From sequence record OP999020.1: 23,609 bases of DNA; one strand, given 5' to 3'. Shown here piece after piece: positions 8,901 through 17,212 of the stretch. The notes under the pieces were generated by a model. The model was not told where the DNA came from. It worked only from the letters and a program-made list of their open reading frames with translations, and searched no databases. The first letter of the stretch is position 1, and every line of letters starts with the position of its first letter. A program made the position numbers and the translations under genes.

Positions 8901-11900
8901 ATTACAAAGCCTAGGAATAAATATTGATCCATCACAAATCCAGCAGACTATAGATAATATCAACCAAAGCATAAATGAAATACAGGCAATACAAGGTTCT
9001 TCTCAGCAATTACAAAACATATTGAAGCAAATACAAAATCAATTACAAACGCCTCAAAGTGCAGAAACATTAACATTAAACTTAATGAATCTATCGAGTC
9101 AAGGCTTGCAAATAATCAGTAATATAATAGCAACATATCAAAAATATGGGCAAAGCCCAGACCAAAGCATTTTATCGCTGCAAAAGAAACTACAGAAGAT
9201 TTATGATAATGCACAGAGCGAATACCAGTTATTAACTGCGCAACAATCTTCTCAATCATTTACACAATCAGCAGGCGATATTGCTACTGGAAACATAGGT
9301 GGGGCTATTATAAGTGGTCTAGCTGGTATTGGTGAAGCTGTCTTATCTGGTTTAGCAAATATAGGCGCCAATTTCGTAAGCGTTGTTGGCACAGCAATAA
9401 ACGATGGTTTAAACGATCTAAGCAACTTCATAACTCATGCCATTCCTGGCATAGCTGGGCAAATAATCGCTGGAATTGTAATAGGTGCATTATTTACAAT
9501 CGTACAATTCATACCTGGAGTTGATGTAGCAGTTGATACAGCAATTGGAGCTACTATCATGGCTGCAACAATAGGTGATGCAATACAACAATACTATTTA
9601 TCCGGAATTTCTAATCCGCTAACAATAGCAACAGATATAGGAAAATCGTTTATAACACCAGAAGGATTAGCTGCGCTGTTTGCCGGTGTAGGTTTTTCAA
9701 TCGGATTGCCACGAGTTGTTGATAATGTAGGCGATTTATTCAAATCAACTGATGATGTAAAAGTATCTGGAGTAGTAAAAAGCCTAGATAATGCGAAAAT
9801 TGACTTAGACAAAATACAAGCAAGGATGGGTGACTTATTAAATAAGCTAAAATTAGACAAGACTAAAATTGATGTGACAAAAGTTGCCGAAAACCTAAGA
9901 GATTTAAATGATCTCCTTAGTATAAAGGGAGTATTAGACGGTATTAAAGACTATCTTGACAAACTAACAGAACGCTTGAATGGAATTTTAAAAATAGATG
10001 CAAAAGTAAAAGTTGGACCAGAAGGTGCAGAAGTTTATACGATAAAATTAGGACCATTTGGTGAAGAAGTTGCTAGTTTAACTGCAACCATACAAAAAAT
10101 AGAACAGGCTGCTGAAATTACATTGGAAAAACTAAAATCAAGCCTCAAGATAACTGACGAAGGAGTAGAAATAAAAGGTGGTAGCAATAATACAATAACG
10201 ATAGCTAATAAAGAAGCACTATATACTCAGACAGCAGGCAATCTATCCACAAAAACTGAAATTCCTTCTGAAGGAAAAATAGGCTTACCAGAATTTGAAA
10301 CAGTCAAGATAAATACTGGGGAGTTACATGGTACTACGTTTTCAGACCTAGTAGAACCAAGCAAAGCAAATCTGACTGAAATTAATTTAGAACAAGCAGT
10401 TAATAAATTTTCGCAAATCCCACCAGAGATTAGTAGATTAGAGGCACAATTTGACAATAATGAAACCTTCGCATTGGATATCAGTAAAGAGTTTGCAGAT
10501 TATTTGCACGCAAAATATGATGCCTTAAGATCTCAAATTGTAAATATATCAAAACAAATAGCAAAAGAGCACTACGATAACCCAGATTTTGCAGCAGCAG
10601 AGGAAAAAATAGCTCAGCTGGGTTTTAGAAACCAAATAGATTCCGCTGCTAACAAGATAGAGACATTGAATCAAAAATTAATTGAACTGAGAAAGATAGG
10701 TAATTTATTAAAAGCTGTCAAGGAGAAAACAACGATAGATATCGAACCATTATTGAAAGATTATGTTGATGGTAAGATAGATAATATATATGAGCTAGCA
10801 AATATGATAAATGAAAAACTTTATGACTATTATAAACCACAAATTGATTCTTTAGAAAATAATATTTTAAGCACTTTACAGAAGAAGGGCGCAACACCAG
10901 ACCAAATTGCACAAGTAAAGAGTGAAATTGATAATTTAGTGTTAAATCAAATTGATGAGTTTATTAATCCAAAAGAATCAACAGATACAACACAAGTACT
11001 TGATAATGTTAGTAATCTTGTTGATCAGTTAAACAAAATTGAAGCGTTTGCAAAGAATGCATCTAATGCAAATGATATGATTAACATAATAGAGGACCGC
11101 CTTGGTGGAGGTTCCGGCACACAATATGAAATACAAGCAAATACTAAAACGGAGAATCAACCATTAGGTTCAAATAACATTAGCCAACCAACTACTCCTC
11201 AAAATACTCCTAGCACCACTGGTCAAACTCCTGGTACTACTGCCTCTAGTGGTATTGAGAGTCAGACTGGTAGTGGTCAAATTGCAGTACAAATACCGAA
11301 AGAGGCAGTAAAAAGTGCAGAAAGTAATGTGGTAAACTTATCGCTAAGGTATAGCCTTTCTGACATTATCAATACCGCTAGGCAAACACTTGGAGAAGAC
11401 TTTGATAGAGAATTGTACGCATTTTCGCAGTTGTTTGGACAAGATTCTATAAACCAGGCAATTTTAGATGCTGTGAATAAGTCCCCAACACCAGATCTAG
11501 ACTCCATAGCAAGAACATTAGGCGATGTTATAGAGAGTAAAGTTGATGAGGTTTTACGGACTTCCCCAGATAAAGCAGTTGCAACTATTGAAGATATGCT
11601 AAAAATCAATAATGATTTAGTAAAAAGTAAGCTCACAACAGATTTACTTGACTTTATAAAGAATAATCCAAAAGCAACATTTAATGATTTATTGACATTT
11701 ACAGAAAAAGATCTACCAAAAATTGTTAATGATGTTAAGGACACATTAACAAATTCGGTTTTAGATCAATTGAGTAAAGGATTTGGTAATTTGACTAACT
11801 TAATTGGGAAAGATTCACTGAAGACATTCCTTGAAAATGAGATAAAGAATGGTGTATTTGATGTAAATAAGTTGTTAAATGATGCTAAAGCGTTTGCAGA

Positions 11901-12972
11901 TTCCAGGCTGACAGAATTATTGAAAACTAATCCGGAGCAGGTACTCTCAACGATACTAGATTCTGCAAAGATTGGGAATAAGCTGATTAGAGATAAACTG
12001 TTGACAGATACATTAGACTTTGTAAAACGTTTTGGCGGTAATGTGACATTACAAGATATTGCGGAATTTATAGCAAAGGACGCTTCTGATCTAAAAACGC
12101 AACTTACAAGTACATTAAAGAGTGGTAACTTAAAAGGACTGGCAAATACGTTCCCTGCTTTGAAAAACGTTTTGGAGGAACTAAATACGGACCCAGTAAG
12201 AGGACTGAAACAGTACTTTAGTTTAGTAGACCCAACAGTTGCTGAGAGCTTAAATAGGATAACATCAGATAATGCACTAGATATTCTTGACGCACTAAAG
12301 AGTGATAATTTAACTAAGATCGCACAAATACTTGACTTATCAGTAGACGAACTAGAAAGGCCAGAAGTTAAACTATCAATAATCAGTGAGATATTAGATG
12401 ACTTAATGAAAAAACTAAAGGTGAAAGAAATAACTGTCGAAGAATTTGAAAGTGCGGTAGAAAGTTTGAAAGAAACGATAAATGAAATATTGCCAGAATA
12501 TAGAAATCTGCTAGGAGATTACGCTGAGAAGCTACAAGAACAAGTACAAGAAGTTGAGGATTATGTAAAAGAAAAAAGATTGTCTAAAGTAGTTGAACTT
12601 TATGATGTATTGGTTCCATCTACCGCTGAATTACCAGTGATCTTGTCAATAGCAAGCAATAGTGACATTAATTATTTATTAGACTATGTAGAACAATTAG
12701 CCTCTCAAGAACAAACACCACAAGTTAGCCAAGAAACGCCACAACAAGGAGTACAAGAAGAACAGAGTACAACAGTTTTATCAACACCAGCTCAACCAGA
12801 ATCACCTATACTGGAAGAACCTTTAGCCCCACCACCCACTGAACCAAATCAACAAGAGCAACCAGAATACCCAATGCCAACGGGACCTAATGCACCAGCA
12901 TTGCCAAACAGAAATACTAGATCTGTCAGTGGTCAAACGCAACAACAAATACTATACTTCCCCATTTCATGA
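5932..12972 (+). CDS. Giant 2346-aa helical/coiled-coil protein, probable virion structural protein of bicaudaviruses
   Basis: Uninterrupted 7-kb ORF with a Q/N/S-rich, charge-poor N-half, a hydrophobic Gly/Ala-rich middle (about aa 1114-1263), a K/E/D/L-rich C-half and a Pro-rich tail. Comparably huge proteins are known from STSV1 and ATV; homology is inferred, not aligned. Confidence 0.9.
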   Translation: MSVTQPTTEQLNAYAQYTSLQQQLSNLLNQIQQIPNPPTPPQPPTSNDPASLSNYYSSLAEYYQNIQSYSQEYGKTITQNLQILQQSMQIINQMEGLLKILGQTDSNLQQVADQISQNINYYQQLQNATQTNYSSYAAFFNNLANAYSEINQYQQLPSLPQAPSGSVSLSGAAQYYSSLANWLTQNSSTVQQNISALQGAIQALQAALNNVPPGYNASQLQQQLQQWQQSLAQLQSLTNLNPQQLQNTATAYSLWAQGITALNKSDYQDAVNDFNQALQAVGLSPPSSPTQKAPSSQWAALFYLSGLANALLNAQNIQNQYQQQLNQLGQQISSQQGGNISPQLLQTISQFYTTLSQELAQVKPYFEQASQYGANVGVQINADGYNTASKLAADLAKLASDMANALQQLSNSNTQNPNPANQASQILMGDQGLVNEINSLASSLPSSFSSLVTDAQSLVSGYDELTKSSTNAYTFYSGVNQIQQYLNQQDYQDAYNAAVNLAKSLGISVSINDLTQQSYQPPSNDQETETVYYLLLLSKWGLTYQSITNQYQQQINSLASSISSSSSMQQTFSTYAQIFKLMYEMYNTLQQITPAGNAAFSYFGETTFPQNYFATAAELMKKASDIASQIASDLANGNYDDIEKMQLNFSELSQLQSMNNSLTQNMTSSIQQNISNFAIAVANLQYNIAFTNSINKALQQVNNQQNQTTVNQNSIAANRFFRGRFGNAYEASSNSSAQTYQQLSQTYAQVAQQITTVTQQQASGSVQIPGVGTVNVRVPNDLINSAGQTAQKMKLLSQAYNALAQASQNSNDPQTALQNYQTAYNNFTQAGVSQDKLSNLQSVISFYQYLVNNQGTLQSIQSQLQEIGNLTPQVNNNSVKLGTAALVASAATMPLSQMRSTVEQATGLDQIKQQIDNYYDNFPSLPQNLQQQVNNMHTIADTTVDLYTNNLVARAYISVTQLPNVSADQQIQSLQNAKQALQNAKQDTQTLQSLGINIDPSQIQQTIDNINQSINEIQAIQGSSQQLQNILKQIQNQLQTPQSAETLTLNLMNLSSQGLQIISNIIATYQKYGQSPDQSILSLQKKLQKIYDNAQSEYQLLTAQQSSQSFTQSAGDIATGNIGGAIISGLAGIGEAVLSGLANIGANFVSVVGTAINDGLNDLSNFITHAIPGIAGQIIAGIVIGALFTIVQFIPGVDVAVDTAIGATIMAATIGDAIQQYYLSGISNPLTIATDIGKSFITPEGLAALFAGVGFSIGLPRVVDNVGDLFKSTDDVKVSGVVKSLDNAKIDLDKIQARMGDLLNKLKLDKTKIDVTKVAENLRDLNDLLSIKGVLDGIKDYLDKLTERLNGILKIDAKVKVGPEGAEVYTIKLGPFGEEVASLTATIQKIEQAAEITLEKLKSSLKITDEGVEIKGGSNNTITIANKEALYTQTAGNLSTKTEIPSEGKIGLPEFETVKINTGELHGTTFSDLVEPSKANLTEINLEQAVNKFSQIPPEISRLEAQFDNNETFALDISKEFADYLHAKYDALRSQIVNISKQIAKEHYDNPDFAAAEEKIAQLGFRNQIDSAANKIETLNQKLIELRKIGNLLKAVKEKTTIDIEPLLKDYVDGKIDNIYELANMINEKLYDYYKPQIDSLENNILSTLQKKGATPDQIAQVKSEIDNLVLNQIDEFINPKESTDTTQVLDNVSNLVDQLNKIEAFAKNASNANDMINIIEDRLGGGSGTQYEIQANTKTENQPLGSNNISQPTTPQNTPSTTGQTPGTTASSGIESQTGSGQIAVQIPKEAVKSAESNVVNLSLRYSLSDIINTARQTLGEDFDRELYAFSQLFGQDSINQAILDAVNKSPTPDLDSIARTLGDVIESKVDEVLRTSPDKAVATIEDMLKINNDLVKSKLTTDLLDFIKNNPKATFNDLLTFTEKDLPKIVNDVKDTLTNSVLDQLSKGFGNLTNLIGKDSLKTFLENEIKNGVFDVNKLLNDAKAFADSRLTELLKTNPEQVLSTILDSAKIGNKLIRDKLLTDTLDFVKRFGGNVTLQDIAEFIAKDASDLKTQLTSTLKSGNLKGLANTFPALKNVLEELNTDPVRGLKQYFSLVDPTVAESLNRITSDNALDILDALKSDNLTKIAQILDLSVDELERPEVKLSIISEILDDLMKKLKVKEITVEEFESAVESLKETINEILPEYRNLLGDYAEKLQEQVQEVEDYVKEKRLSKVVELYDVLVPSTAELPVILSIASNSDINYLLDYVEQLASQEQTPQVSQETPQQGVQEEQSTTVLSTPAQPESPILEEPLAPPPTEPNQQEQPEYPMPTGPNAPALPNRNTRSVSGQTQQQILYFPIS
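8849..8890 (+). repeat. Perfect 21-bp tandem duplication (one heptad) within the giant ORF
   Basis: CATTACAAAATGCGAAACAAG x2, encoding LQNAKQA-LQNAKQD. Confidence 0.9.
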
Positions 12973-13956
12973 AGATACAAAAATTTTTTCTAATTCTTTT
13001 ATTAATTCTTTTTGAGCTTCTTCTCTAACTCTCTTTCTTATTCCCCACTCAACTCGTAATTCAACTTCTACTTTCTTTAACAAACCAGTCTTCACATAGT
13101 AATCATACACTATCATCCATTTTTTCCTAGCCTTATCACGTAGTTCGAATAAATATGCAATAATATCCCTCATATTAATCTGAGGAGGTTGCCTATCTAT
13201 CTCATCCTTATAGAGTTCTATAGACTTCTCAAGCTCATTAGAAAAGATCCACCTCATCATATAATAATACTTACGAATAGAAAATTCCCTTGCAAATGCT
13301 TTTTCGTTAATCTTATCACCATCAATTGGTACATAACCTCCTGCTAAAAGTTCTTTAGTATGTACTTGCCATAGAAACTTAATTCTTAACTCAGCAATTA
13401 GACCACTCCTTCCATATGAACCACATAAACCGTTTTCAGAAACTTCATATAAATAACTATCAATTTTCTTCTTAAGGTCGTCAATTGCTGGCATTATTTC
13501 ATCTACTGCTTTCTCTAAACGTTCTGCTTTTTCTTGCTCGCCTTTCTCTTTAAGAGCTCCAAGATGTATGTAAAAGACAAAATCCTTCATAAATAGCCCA
13601 TAGGGAAGGCGTGTAAGAATAATTTTTCTAGATAGATCTTCATAAAAATATGACCAGATTTTTGCGCAGTACTTAGAGGCACCATCAAGTACTTTTTTTA
13701 TTTCTCCAAGTACTACATGAGGATCATCGTTTTTGTGTGCTTCAAGATACTCCTTTACGCTTTTATATCCTTGTGGAATGTATAAATACTTATCAAACTC
13801 TTTTTCATCCATTATTTGAACGTTTAGTCTTTCTTCAACCTTTTCTATTTCTCTCGTTATCCAGTAATCATTCAAGCTTTTATAGTACTCGATTATCTTT
13901 TTCGCTTCTGTTATAATCTCGTTTAGCCTTTCAACATACTCTGAATAACTTCTCAT
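12967..13956 (-). CDS. Hypothetical highly charged helical protein, 329 aa
   Basis: Long ORF with an ATG start 24 nt after a TTTTTTTA box (13981-13988, minus strand). No family recognised. Confidence 0.82.
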   Translation of the reverse strand: MRSYSEYVERLNEIITEAKKIIEYYKSLNDYWITREIEKVEERLNVQIMDEKEFDKYLYIPQGYKSVKEYLEAHKNDDPHVVLGEIKKVLDGASKYCAKIWSYFYEDLSRKIILTRLPYGLFMKDFVFYIHLGALKEKGEQEKAERLEKAVDEIMPAIDDLKKKIDSYLYEVSENGLCGSYGRSGLIAELRIKFLWQVHTKELLAGGYVPIDGDKINEKAFAREFSIRKYYYMMRWIFSNELEKSIELYKDEIDRQPPQINMRDIIAYLFELRDKARKKWMIVYDYYVKTGLLKKVEVELRVEWGIRKRVREEAQKELIKELEKIFVSS

Positions 13957-13998
13957 CTAAAAATATAGAGAAAAGGAAGGTAAAAAAATTTTTATCTT

Positions 13999-14499
13999 TT
14001 ATACGCCTTGCGGGATGTAACCTAATGCCATTAGTAGGTATAGAATTTCTGACACTGAAAATACACTTATTAAGACGTCATCAAATACCATAATAGTTGG
14101 CGCTACGATTAAACCTTGAATCATTAGTGGAATCCAATGGGCAAAGAAGAAAATCGCATTAGTGTAGATATACGTAACATATGCTACTATAAACACAGTT
14201 TGCGCGTAGGTTTGTGTTGAGGAGGAAATGTTTGATAGTACTGATATTCCAGATATTGCTCCTAGTGCTGCTACACCGTTTGCTATAGCCCCAAAAAACG
14301 GATTATTTGTTAACCCAGATAGGAATGAGATAATGCTTATCCCAGAAATGGAAGATAGTAATTGAGAAGCTTGCCCAGAAAAATAGTTCGGTGCTGCCGC
14401 TATAAATGAATCAATTAAGATGTTCGCTACAGCAGCGCCTATTACTAGCCCGAATGCTGTGTTAAATGTTGCTTGTAAGAAATTTGTTAGGAATCCCGT
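13999..14499 (-). CDS. Multi-pass membrane protein, about 166 aa, apparently starting at ACG
   Basis: The 65-aa ORF-track call (13999..14196) is the tail of a frame open up to 14505. It reads (M)GFLTNFLQATFNTAFGLVIGAAVANILIDSFIAAAPNYFSGQASQLLSSISGISIISFLSGLTNNPFFGAIANGVAALGAISGISVLSNISSSTQTYAQTVFIVAY... An SD-like GGTGA lies 6 nt before the ACG at 14499-14497. Confidence 0.7.
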   Translation of the reverse strand, partial: TGFLTNFLQATFNTAFGLVIGAAVANILIDSFIAAAPNYFSGQASQLLSSISGISIISFLSGLTNNPFFGAIANGVAALGAISGISVLSNISSSTQTYAQTVFIVAYVTYIYTNAIFFFAHWIPLMIQGLIVAPTIMVFDDVLISVFSVSEILYLLMALGYIPQGV

Positions 14500-14539
14500 A
14501 TTCTCTCACCTTGTATATAATTATTCTATTTCACTCACC

Positions 14540-17212
14540 TTATAAGAGTTGTGATTGTGCTCTTTGTGTTGCTGAGCTAGAAGAAAGTACTGCTGGTGCT
14601 ACTGATACTGCTGCATCACCTACTACGTTTATTACTGCATTTATCGCATTAACTGCATTGGCATATGTTGCGTTTTGTGTGTAATTTTGACCAGTTATCG
14701 TGTTTAATGCGTTGATGAGATTTAGATAATATTTTGCTTGTTCTTTATACTGTATTGCAGAATTAGTATCTCCATTTTTTAAAGCCTCATATGCCTTTAC
14801 AGCATAATAATATAAAGATTCGAGTAATCCATTCATCTTCATTGTAAATGTGCTTCCTTGCTCTTGTGATAAAGCTATGATGTAAGGGGCATATTGTGGT
14901 GCTGCAGCTATTGCATCTGCATAATCATTATTCATTAAGTAATTTGCGACTGTTTGATTATATTCTATTTGTACTGCTTGTGATGAGTTGTTTGGCGAGA
15001 ATGCGGATACGATGTTATTAATGTAAGTGCTTAATCCATTAAGGTATGGATTATTAGTATTAGCTAATGCCGAAAGTTGGTTAACAATGAACTGTGGATT
15101 TTGCCCTTGTGCAAATGCCGTATCAAAGTCTTGTAACAAATTCTGAACCTGATTGATTGTATTTATTGCCTGATTGATCTCGGCTGTATTATTAGTATCT
15201 GATTTTAACTGATTCAATATCTGAAGGGCCTCATTTAGATTACCGCTTTGTAGTGCGTTTTGGAGATTTGTAGTTAGATTCTGCGCGTTTGTACCTACTT
15301 GCTGTTGTGCGGTTTGTAATAATTGTGCTACAGTATTTGCCTCATTATTTAGATAATTAGCCAAATACGAAGTGATTGGATTACTGCCCACTTGATTTGC
15401 GATTTGTTGTAATTGATTTGCAATTTGCTGTAATGTGTTAACATCTGATGAAGTGTATTGCCCTTTATTTTGTTCTTGCTGTATTGTACTAACGGCATTA
15501 TTGAACTGCTGCTGTATACTGCTCAATATCTGAATTGCTTGAGAGATTGTACTTGCATCTTGTGTATCGCCTATTTGATTAGCAATTTGCTCACCACTCT
15601 GTAAAGCGGAAATTGCTGCATTTATATTACCGTTCTGTAAATCGTTTTGTACTTGACTAATTAAGCTTTGGAATTGTTGTTGCATTTGCTGTAATTGTTT
15701 CTGTTGTTGCTGCTGTAAGTAGTTTTGTATGTTAGTTTGTACTTGTTGCGCAGTACTCGCCAAATTGCTTATATAGCTAGATAAGGAAGAAGTGATTTGA
15801 TTACTGCCTATACTGTTGTTTATGTTGTTTAGTGTATTAATAGCATTTTGAATGGTCTGTAGATCACTTTGTGTATAACTACTCTTATTCTGTTCTTGTT
15901 GTATTGTACTGGCAACACTGCTTAATTGCTGCTGTATATTGTTTAATATCTGAATTGCTTGTGAGATTGTGTTTGCAGCCTGCGTATAACCAATTTGATT
16001 TGCGAGTTGGTCACCACTCTGCAAGGCAGAAAGAGCGTTACTTATGTTACCACTCTGTAGGTTGTTCTCAGCTTGAGAAACATAGTTTTGTACTTCTTGC
16101 TGTAAGTAGTTTTGTATGTTAGTTTGTACTTGTTGCGCAGTACTCGCCAAATTGCTTATATAGCTAGATAAGTAAGAGGTAATAGAATTGTTGCCTATAC
16201 TGTTATTTATACTGTTTAGTGCACTAATAGCATTTTGAATAGCTTGCAAATCGCTAGGTGTATAACTACTCTTATTCTGTTCTTGCTGTATTGTACTGAT
16301 AGCATTATTGAGCTGTTGTTGAATGTTATCTAGTATTTGCGTTGCCTGTGAGATTGTGTTTGCATCTTGTGTATCGCCTATTTGATTAGCAATTTGCTCA
16401 CCACTCTGTAAGGCAGAAAGAGCACCACTTATGTTACCGCTTTGTAAATCATTTTCAGCTTGAGAAATGTAGTTCTGTACTTGCTGTGTATTTGGTCCAG
16501 AACTGCCTCCACCACCGCCTGAACCACCAGAACCACCGCTTGAACCACCACCGCTTCCAGAGCCACCACCACCACCAGAGCTTGGCGGACTGGAACTACC
16601 CCCGCCACCGCCTGAACCACCACCGCCGGAGTTTGGATTAGAACTTCCACCACCGCCTCCAGAACCAGGGCCCGAGCTGTTTGGTGAGCTATTAGGACTG
16701 CTTGATTGGTTATTAAGGTAGTTTTGTATTTGTTGTTGAACTGACTGTGCTTGTTGATATAGACTGTTTAAATAATTTGCAAGAGGACCAGCATATGGAT
16801 TATTATTGTTTGCTTCTGCGTCTAAGCCATTAACAACATTCTCCAAATTATTTACAATTGTGTTAATTGTATTCAAATCGTTTTGTGTATATGAACTTTG
16901 TTGTTGTAATTGAAGTATTGTGTTTCTGTATTGATTATAGTTATATGCAGTAAGAGCATTTAGGACTGACTGCGCATTATAAGCATCGCCTTGATTACCA
17001 GTTTGCTTATCATATTGTATTATTCCATTTAGAATATCTTGCGCATCAGCAGGAGAAGCACCAGCACTAACAACTTGCCCATTTTGAACTGTTTGTGTAC
17101 ATTCTGCAGGACCATATCCATTACTGTATAGCGGAGGGGGATTAATATAAAATACACTTTGGTAAGCCATTAACCAACCTTGATTTGTGCATGGTTGCGA
17201 ATTTGACGACAT
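14540..17212 (-). CDS. 890-aa Q/N/S-rich helical-repeat protein with a Gly/Ser linker, probable virion (tail/filament) protein
   Basis: ATG start with GAGGAG upstream. Contains a Gly/Ser/Pro low-complexity linker (about 16490-16700), three ~129-aa repeats plus degenerate partial copies, and very few charged residues. Confidence 0.88.
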   Translation of the reverse strand: MSSNSQPCTNQGWLMAYQSVFYINPPPLYSNGYGPAECTQTVQNGQVVSAGASPADAQDILNGIIQYDKQTGNQGDAYNAQSVLNALTAYNYNQYRNTILQLQQQSSYTQNDLNTINTIVNNLENVVNGLDAEANNNNPYAGPLANYLNSLYQQAQSVQQQIQNYLNNQSSSPNSSPNSSGPGSGGGGGSSNPNSGGGGSGGGGGSSSPPSSGGGGGSGSGGGSSGGSGGSGGGGGSSGPNTQQVQNYISQAENDLQSGNISGALSALQSGEQIANQIGDTQDANTISQATQILDNIQQQLNNAISTIQQEQNKSSYTPSDLQAIQNAISALNSINNSIGNNSITSYLSSYISNLASTAQQVQTNIQNYLQQEVQNYVSQAENNLQSGNISNALSALQSGDQLANQIGYTQAANTISQAIQILNNIQQQLSSVASTIQQEQNKSSYTQSDLQTIQNAINTLNNINNSIGSNQITSSLSSYISNLASTAQQVQTNIQNYLQQQQQKQLQQMQQQFQSLISQVQNDLQNGNINAAISALQSGEQIANQIGDTQDASTISQAIQILSSIQQQFNNAVSTIQQEQNKGQYTSSDVNTLQQIANQLQQIANQVGSNPITSYLANYLNNEANTVAQLLQTAQQQVGTNAQNLTTNLQNALQSGNLNEALQILNQLKSDTNNTAEINQAINTINQVQNLLQDFDTAFAQGQNPQFIVNQLSALANTNNPYLNGLSTYINNIVSAFSPNNSSQAVQIEYNQTVANYLMNNDYADAIAAAPQYAPYIIALSQEQGSTFTMKMNGLLESLYYYAVKAYEALKNGDTNSAIQYKEQAKYYLNLINALNTITGQNYTQNATYANAVNAINAVINVVGDAAVSVAPAVLSSSSATQRAQSQLL
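15290..16483 (-). repeat. Three tandem intragenic repeats with a 387-bp (129-aa) unit
   Basis: 75-bp identity between 15711-15785 and 16098-16172 (offset 387). 52-bp identity between 15553-15604 and 16360-16411 (offset 807 = 2x387+33). Outer boundaries are approximate. Confidence 0.9.

Follow-up and report, generated by a model that had tools for sequence, protein, structure and literature searches.

How does translation begin in a viral gene that has no canonical start for most of its length? Archaeal start codons are taken to be AUG, GUG and UUG only, and annotation pipelines enforce this rule. The analyzed window is the whole 23,609-nt stretch taken from contig OP999020.1 of the spindle-shaped archaeal virus STSV3, which was assembled from Illumina reads with SPAdes. 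Its DNA is 85-87% identical to that of STSV2 and STSV1, which are large spindle viruses. The initial annotation of the window had described an overlooked membrane protein of 166 aa with a frame starting at ACG, and direct checks of the sequence agree with this description. Thus, a minus-strand frame is open from position 14505 to the TAA at 14001-13999 and is closed on its 5' side by the TGA at 14508-14506, with 166 codons from the ACG to the stop. The first in-frame ATG, GTG, or TTG is the GTG of codon 102, and a start there would give only the C-terminal 65 aa, with 101 of the 166 codons lost in STSV3. The context AAGGTGA-GAGAAT-ACG-GGA-TTC was confirmed as well, with the GGTGA motif located 6 nt 5' of the ACG. 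Another GTG (14509-14507) is out of frame with the ORF and belongs to this Shine-Dalgarno (SD) motif. All features are listed in Table 1.

Table 1. Features of the ORF36-type locus, its relatives, and the ORF13 homologues. Relatives are numbered herein with the prefix L.
Feature	Sequence	Position	Strand	Basis or remark
STSV3_1_ORF16, 890 aa, homologue of STSV1 ORF37 (phrog_38696), directly upstream	Window	14540..17212	-	Annotation and profile match
29-nt insertion relative to ATG-type relatives, from the TAA of the upstream gene to the SD	Window	14511..14539	-	Alignment
19-nt AT-rich core, AAATAGAATAATTATATAC	Window	14513..14531	-	Unchanged in all 11 ACG carriers; TATA-box-like
Shine-Dalgarno motif GGTGA	Window	14506..14510	-	Its TGA doubles as the in-frame upstream stop
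Unannotated CDS, 166 codons and TAA	Window	13999..14499	-	Orthologue of STSV1 ORF36 / STSV2_33 (phrog_22026)
Proposed initiation codon ACG	Window	14497..14499	-	Aligns with the ATG of STSV1, STSV4_3, L018, L019, and L020
First canonical in-frame start, GTG, codon 102	Window	14194..14196	-	Sequence
STSV3_1_ORF15, 50 aa, called by the depositors	Window	13941..14093	+	Overlaps the 3' end of the gene in antisense
Run of seven T, starting 11 nt 3' of the stop	Window	13982..13988	-	Read from the sequence
ORF35 homologue, downstream	Window	12967-13956		Annotation
ATG start, insertion absent	STSV1, L019, STSV4_3, L020, L018
ACG start, 29-36-nt insertion present	STSV3, STSV4_6, STSV2, L008-L013, L021, L024
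ORF13 homologue	STSV1, AJ783769.1 (L027)	15085-15450
ORF13 homologue	STSV2, JQ287645.1 (L025)	11907-12272
ORF13 homologue, STSV4_1_ORF18	OP999027.1 (L029)	From about base 100

The gene had indeed been overlooked. The OP999020.1 record contains no annotation of it and has only the antisense STSV3_1_ORF15 at this place, which is probably a spurious call. The depositors' rule was to take the longest ORF with an ATG, GTG, or TTG start (PMC10101205), and this rule accounts for the calling of the antisense ORF instead of the gene. Additional small ORFs were called by the depositors in STSV4_6 (STSV4_6_ORF1-3; L004, 55-180, 235-372, and 476-601). Together with STSV3_1_ORF15, they either run antisense to the ORF36-type gene or are pieces of it, and they are probably artefacts of the same ATG/GTG/TTG-only rule. 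STSV1, STSV2, and the window were screened for conserved open codons located 5' of the first canonical start. The ORF36-type gene was the top outlier of this screen, with 102-103 codons; a start-less open stretch of this length is beyond chance.

The encoded protein has a full-length match to phrog_22026 in PHROGs (E 8.1e-77, residues 2-166 of the 166-position profile). It is 83% identical to the STSV2 protein and 73% identical to the STSV1 protein, and tblastn identities to STSV2, STSV1, and STSV4 range from 73 to 100%. As in STSV1 and STSV2, the gene is located between the ORF35 and ORF37 homologues on the same strand. Judged by sequence comparison, the STSV3 frame is the orthologue of STSV1 ORF36 (CAH04219.1) and STSV2_33 (AFU92012.1), with equal length, the same neighbours, and the same SD and spacing. 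STSV1 ORF36 differs in having an ATG start and no 29-nt insertion. STSV2 shares the ACG with STSV3, yet its gene is annotated from an internal ATG (147 aa), which hides the non-canonical start in the record. An internal ATG of this kind is lacking in STSV3. The canonical ATG start of the founding member is replaced by ACG in STSV3; this difference concerns the start mode only and does not affect homology.

The STSV3 protein is strongly hydrophobic, with four acidic residues, no Lys or Arg, and about five hydrophobic segments, and it is predicted to be all-helical. This composition supports its description as a membrane protein. AlphaFold2 with an alignment of 10 sequences gave a mean pLDDT of 37 and a pTM of 0.25, which is too poor for a fold search. 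No match was found in Pfam, and the sole family matched in PHROGs, phrog_22026, has no assigned function. In the ESM Atlas, none of the neighbours was credible (best score 0.79), and the best hit of the PDB profile search had only E 0.42. Polytopic membrane proteins normally obey the positive-inside rule, and the absence of Lys and Arg is unusual; the relatives have at most one to three such residues.

Relatives with DNA context were collected from GenBank records, the contigs behind protein matches, and one MAG contig. The comparison with related viruses that had been suggested for this locus yielded ATG in five sequences, three of them from metagenomes, and ACG in 11 with STSV3 included, so a picture in which all relatives read ATG is not borne out. 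The 11 ACG assemblies originate from three isolates, six ENA metagenome assemblies, one JGI metagenome, and one MAG, that is, from different isolates, samples, and laboratories. The MAG contig was the one further ACG carrier found in a search of genome contigs. A pattern scan of metagenome contigs revealed no more relatives, and a search of viral contigs returned STSV1 and STSV2 only.

The GGTGA-N6-ACG arrangement is unchanged in all 11 ACG sequences, and its spacing matches the GGTGA-N6-ATG of STSV1, L019, and L018. Thus, STSV1 has GGTGA-TAGAAG-ATG where the metagenome-type sequences have GGTGA-TAGAAG-ACG, and L018 has GGTGA-GAGAAT-ATG where STSV3 has GGTGA-GAGAAT-ACG, with equal SD and spacing in both pairs. 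L018 reads GGTGAGAGAATATG, the STSV3 context with T replacing C.

In addition to genuine ACG initiation, the initial annotation had considered an ATG-to-ACG mutation or sequencing error and an AG-dinucleotide slip. A sequencing or assembly error for ATG has nothing but prior expectation in its favour, and the ACG is present in 11 independently produced assemblies. Their independence excludes an error as well as a private mutation, and the probability left to the error reading is negligible. A change from ATG to ACG is nevertheless the likely history of the codon, as an old substitution retained in many lineages. The slip finds no support in the alignment, since the ATG relatives have an identical GGTGA with identical 6-nt spacing and no indel; an indel is thereby excluded as the reason why this GTG of the SD is out of frame. 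The ACG is therefore real and fixed in the sequences that carry it.

In the gene tree, the ACG carriers are not grouped as one clade, so their history includes recombination or repeated change; recombination is likely. A single ACG clade was not rejected by the AU test (p 0.16 for the whole gene, 0.09 for the 5' part, and 0.34 for the 3' part). Two versions of the ORF35-ORF37 block were found in the STSV4 deposit, L004 (OP999032.1, STSV4_6) and L005 (OP999029.1, STSV4_3). The STSV4_6 block is near-identical to that of STSV3, with ACG and three synonymous differences, and the STSV4_3 block is very divergent, with ATG and dS of about 2. The STSV4 preparation is thus probably a mixture of at least two viruses. 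In a further copy, from a Metallosphaera MAG contig (L017, GCA_038734555.1, 1390-1812), unrelated sequence takes the place of the first ~27 codons and the ORF37 neighbour is missing; this copy is a recombinant, a remnant, or the product of a chimeric assembly.

Selection tests were limited to the ACG carriers. For codons 2-101, which precede the canonical GTG of STSV3, dN/dS was 0.15-0.26 and the excess of synonymous changes was significant (p from 3e-6 to 5e-4). For codons 2-32, dN/dS was 0.15-0.37, with p 0.006 in two of the three deep pairs. Codons 2-19, compared between STSV3 and the metagenome type, gave dN/dS 0.16 with five synonymous and three conservative changes (p 0.03); taken on its own, this evidence is thin, as the changes are few. 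Variable sites at codon positions 1/2/3 were distributed as 8/1/12 in codons 2-32 and as 19/7/36 in codons 2-101. Even STSV4_3, at dS of about 2, retains the N-terminal motif GFL.NFLQ.T, so the N-terminus matters to the family. In the ACG carriers, the codons located 5' of any canonical start are thus under purifying selection, and the constraint extends from codon 2.

The loss of the canonical start, together with the failure of the depositors to find an ORF for this gene, could also be explained by a decaying pseudogene in the ACG lineage, inactivated by the mutation of its start codon, that looks intact only because the change is recent. Against recent decay, dS among the carriers is 0.25-0.6, dN/dS is 0.15-0.35 over the whole frame, no indels or stops were found in the full-length copies of 166 codons, and STSV3 and STSV4_6 differ by three synonymous and no non-synonymous changes. 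A pseudogene is very unlikely on this evidence. The substitutions instead indicate that the gene is not a pseudogene and that its 5' part is read as protein.

The nearest in-frame stop 5' of the ACG is a TGA two codons away in the STSV3 type and a TAG one codon away in the metagenome type. The distance from the stop of the upstream gene to the ACG is 40, 42, 44, or 45 nt among the carriers and is set by the length of an A-run. Several stops are located between the upstream gene and the ORF36-type frame, and there is no fixed frame relation between them. A programmed readthrough or frameshift fusion with the upstream gene was rejected on the grounds of this variable spacer and the intervening stops. 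As the A-run varies in length, no constant frame arrives from upstream, and neither ORF16 nor the mini-ORF described below can lead into the gene by readthrough or frameshifting. No upstream frame thus feeds the gene.

In a translational counterpart of the slip considered in the initial annotation, the ribosome could also initiate at the GTG inside the SD and enter the ORF through a programmed +1 frameshift in the first 15 codons. All carriers have this GTG, and its frame continues without a stop for 15 codons, past the beginning of the ORF. However, the same GTG is found in the ATG-type relatives as a mere part of the SD, and no separate SD precedes it. The alignment with the ATG relatives contains no indel, and no slippery or stall motif is shared by the carriers, which have GAA-TAC-GGG-ATT or GAA-GAC-GGG-ATT at this place. 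Such a frameshift is even harder to credit than decay and can be regarded as highly improbable.

The ACG is the only near-cognate codon, with at most one mismatch to AUG, common to all carriers between the upstream stop and codon 19. The internal canonical starts differ by lineage: STSV2 has an ATG at codon 20, the metagenome type has a TTG at codon 28 and an ATG at codon 33, and STSV3 has none before the GTG at codon 102. No SD was found before the internal canonical starts of the ACG carriers, and no canonical alternative is shared by them. The protein could nevertheless be made from these starts, or from the near-cognate ATA that STSV3 has at codon 20, with the 5' part constrained for another reason. 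Existing annotations agree with such starts, since STSV2_33 is annotated from the ATG of codon 20 and gene callers begin the metagenome copies at the ATG of codon 33. On the other side, the internal starts are unconserved, whereas the SD and the ACG are invariant. Moreover, substitutions in codons 2-32 are biased to position 3 and conservative among the ACG carriers, and a canonical start in STSV3 deletes 101 of 166 codons that evolve under dN/dS 0.22-0.26. Internal initiation is therefore considered unlikely.

The ACG is accompanied by an AT-rich insertion of 29-36 nt, found in every ACG carrier and in no ATG carrier. Its 5' end contains a second GGTGA (GATGA in the metagenome type) right after the TAA of the upstream gene, and its 3' end is the A-run, with 2, 4, 6, or 7 A among the carriers (14511-14512 in the window). 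The 19-nt core between them is invariant, while nearby synonymous sites differ by 27-36%. No other copies of the insertion or its core were found in the window, STSV1, or STSV2, and the insertion is related neither to the dispersed dyad element nor to the capsid promoters. Two further elements around the start were considered. The first, a 5-codon mini-ORF beginning with GTG or ATG right after the upstream stop, is present in all carriers but is not supported as coding, since all three of its substitutions are non-synonymous and its frame relative to the ACG varies; it might still act in re-initiation. The second, an 8-bp hairpin between the SD region and codons 7-9, was predicted in STSV3 and rejected; its z-score against shuffled sequences is -0.1, and the pairing is lost in STSV1 and STSV4_3.

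The AT-rich element may alternatively be a new promoter, from which the gene would have its own transcript beginning near or just after the ACG, with translation by an unknown leaderless-type initiation. The core fits the archaeal TATA consensus at 7 of 8 positions (ATTATATA) and has remained invariant amid the synonymous divergence around it, and the insertion and the ACG are perfectly linked. However, the distance from the box to the ACG is only 15-20 nt, too short for a normal promoter, and changes with the A-run, whereas the annotated TATA boxes of STSV1 are mostly located 24-45 nt 5' of the start codon. A transcript from about 23 nt past the box would lack the ACG and the first codons, and yet these codons are constrained. 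The SD is invariant as well, although it would be of no use to such a transcript. Transcripts beginning at or after the ACG are thus hard to square with the constraint on codons 2-19 and the invariant SD, and this reading is distinctly unlikely, somewhat more so than internal initiation. The insertion may compensate for the weak start as an unstructured standby region or a second SD copy, add a promoter, or be the site of a regulator.

The locus is located in the structural-gene cluster of STSV3, where a homologue of the giant ORF34 gene converges on the ORF35 homologue. In the initial annotation, the ACG was proposed to keep a virion membrane protein at low copy number, a role that is conjectural. 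In the STSV1 annotation, ORF37 has a TATA box and ORF36 has a ribosome-binding site only, at the same position as the GGTGA motif of STSV3; this arrangement fits a two-gene transcript. The run of seven T downstream of the gene resembles an archaeal terminator and may close such a two-gene unit. The transcript with the ACG gene probably has STSV3_1_ORF16 as its first cistron.

Of the explanations proposed for the locus, genuine ACG initiation is favoured by the fixation of the codon in 11 sequences, an SD and spacing like those of the ATG relatives, and the constraint from codon 2. We consider it on balance probable that this is an expressed gene for a 166-residue polytopic membrane protein, in which the ancestral ATG was changed to ACG in one STSV-like group and translation begins at the ACG under the guidance of the SD. 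The change would have affected STSV2, STSV3, STSV4_6, and eight environmental contigs. According to this model, the ORF36-type gene would be co-transcribed as the second cistron behind the 890-aa ORF37-type gene. The GGUGA motif would pair with the 3' end of the 16S rRNA and set the ACG, 6 nt downstream, in the P site. There, the ACG would serve as the initiation codon and be read by initiator Met-tRNA with one central mismatch, giving Met as the first residue, probably at lower efficiency. Lower efficiency would mean less protein per transcript. The aIF1 of S. solfataricus was reported to discriminate against non-canonical start codons (PMC6237735), so an ACG should be a poor start. A literature search for Archaea and Sulfolobus found no documented ACG start, and a search for STSV proteomics or ribosome profiling found no such studies.

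ACG starts are used in eukaryotic viruses, for example for the AAV capsid protein VP2 and the Sendai virus C' protein, and are thought to set a low or fixed output of the viral proteins. Those starts depend on a scanning 40S subunit and Kozak context, whereas in STSV3 the ribosome would be brought to an internal cistron by an SD. The bacterial infC gene (IF3) has an AUU start and is autoregulated by its own product, which discriminates against such starts. The STSV3 gene shares with infC a conserved non-canonical start behind a normal SD but differs in that no autoregulatory loop is evident. To our knowledge, no natural ACG initiation codon is known in Archaea, and this locus would be the first. 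In ribosome profiling of Haloferax volcanii, about 30% of the putative alternative initiation sites were near-cognate (Gelsinger et al., 2020; PMC7261190). As a guard against false positives, the authors put these sites aside and pursued none of them (PMC7261190). They suggest that the archaeal machinery may use near-cognate codons. Haloferax is a euryarchaeon studied with ribosome footprints, whereas the evidence for STSV3 is evolutionary. With its ACG shared by ten other independently sequenced viruses and its whole frame under coding constraint, the locus is a strong candidate for non-standard translation initiation in Archaea. It would be a further instance of the known non-AUG initiation and has unusually clean comparative support.

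If near-cognate starts recur in STSV-type viruses, as proposed below with ORF13, the eukaryote-like initiation machinery of the host would accept SD-positioned codons other than AUG, GUG, and UUG in vivo. The linkage between the insertion and the ACG would then point to a compensating or regulatory cis element co-evolved with a weak start. The locus offers a natural test case for how strictly start codons are controlled by aIF1, aIF2, and the initiator tRNA of Crenarchaeota at 75-80 C. Another question it could answer is whether archaeal viruses, like eukaryotic ones, set the protein ratios of an operon by weak starts. The claim is open to a direct test, since STSV2 can be grown on Sulfolobus islandicus REY15A, which is genetically tractable. 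Under the start-codon rules, the gene was missed in STSV3 and split into small, probably spurious ORFs in STSV4_6, and the copies of STSV2 and the metagenomes were annotated in shortened form. The gene maps of STSV2, STSV3, and STSV4 are corrected accordingly, and further Sulfolobales virus proteins have possibly been lost or shortened in the same way.

The second rank in the open-codon screen belongs to STSV1 ORF13 / STSV2_11, with 41 codons. ORF13 is annotated from a TTG (81 aa) or later, and its frame is open for 41 more codons without a canonical start. In STSV1, STSV2, and STSV4_1, the first codons of the frame, directly 3' of a TAA, are ATA-ATT-TCT; a GGGG run and a TATA-like TTTAAAAATATAAAC are located just 5' of the frame. 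For codons 3-41, the 39 codons 5' of the TTG, dN/dS was 0.05-0.26 (p from 2e-6 to 0.007), and the upstream codons have a codon-position pattern of 4/2/15. In the protein database, ORF13 is present in shortened versions only. Given this constraint, a product of 122 aa with AUA or AUU as its start codon is probable. Constraint from an ATA or ATT makes near-cognate initiation more credible as a recurring feature of STSV-type viruses. That such starts are recurrent and selectively maintained in these viruses, with ACG in the ORF36-type gene and ATA or ATT in ORF13, is a tentative proposal, plausible but a little short of probable.

A longer frame without ATG, GTG, or TTG was also found in the window. 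This frame (11766-12518, minus strand) is stop-free for 250 codons, is antisense inside the giant gene of 2346 aa, and is open in STSV1 and STSV2 as well. It is most likely a by-product of the codon composition of the giant gene and not a gene itself.
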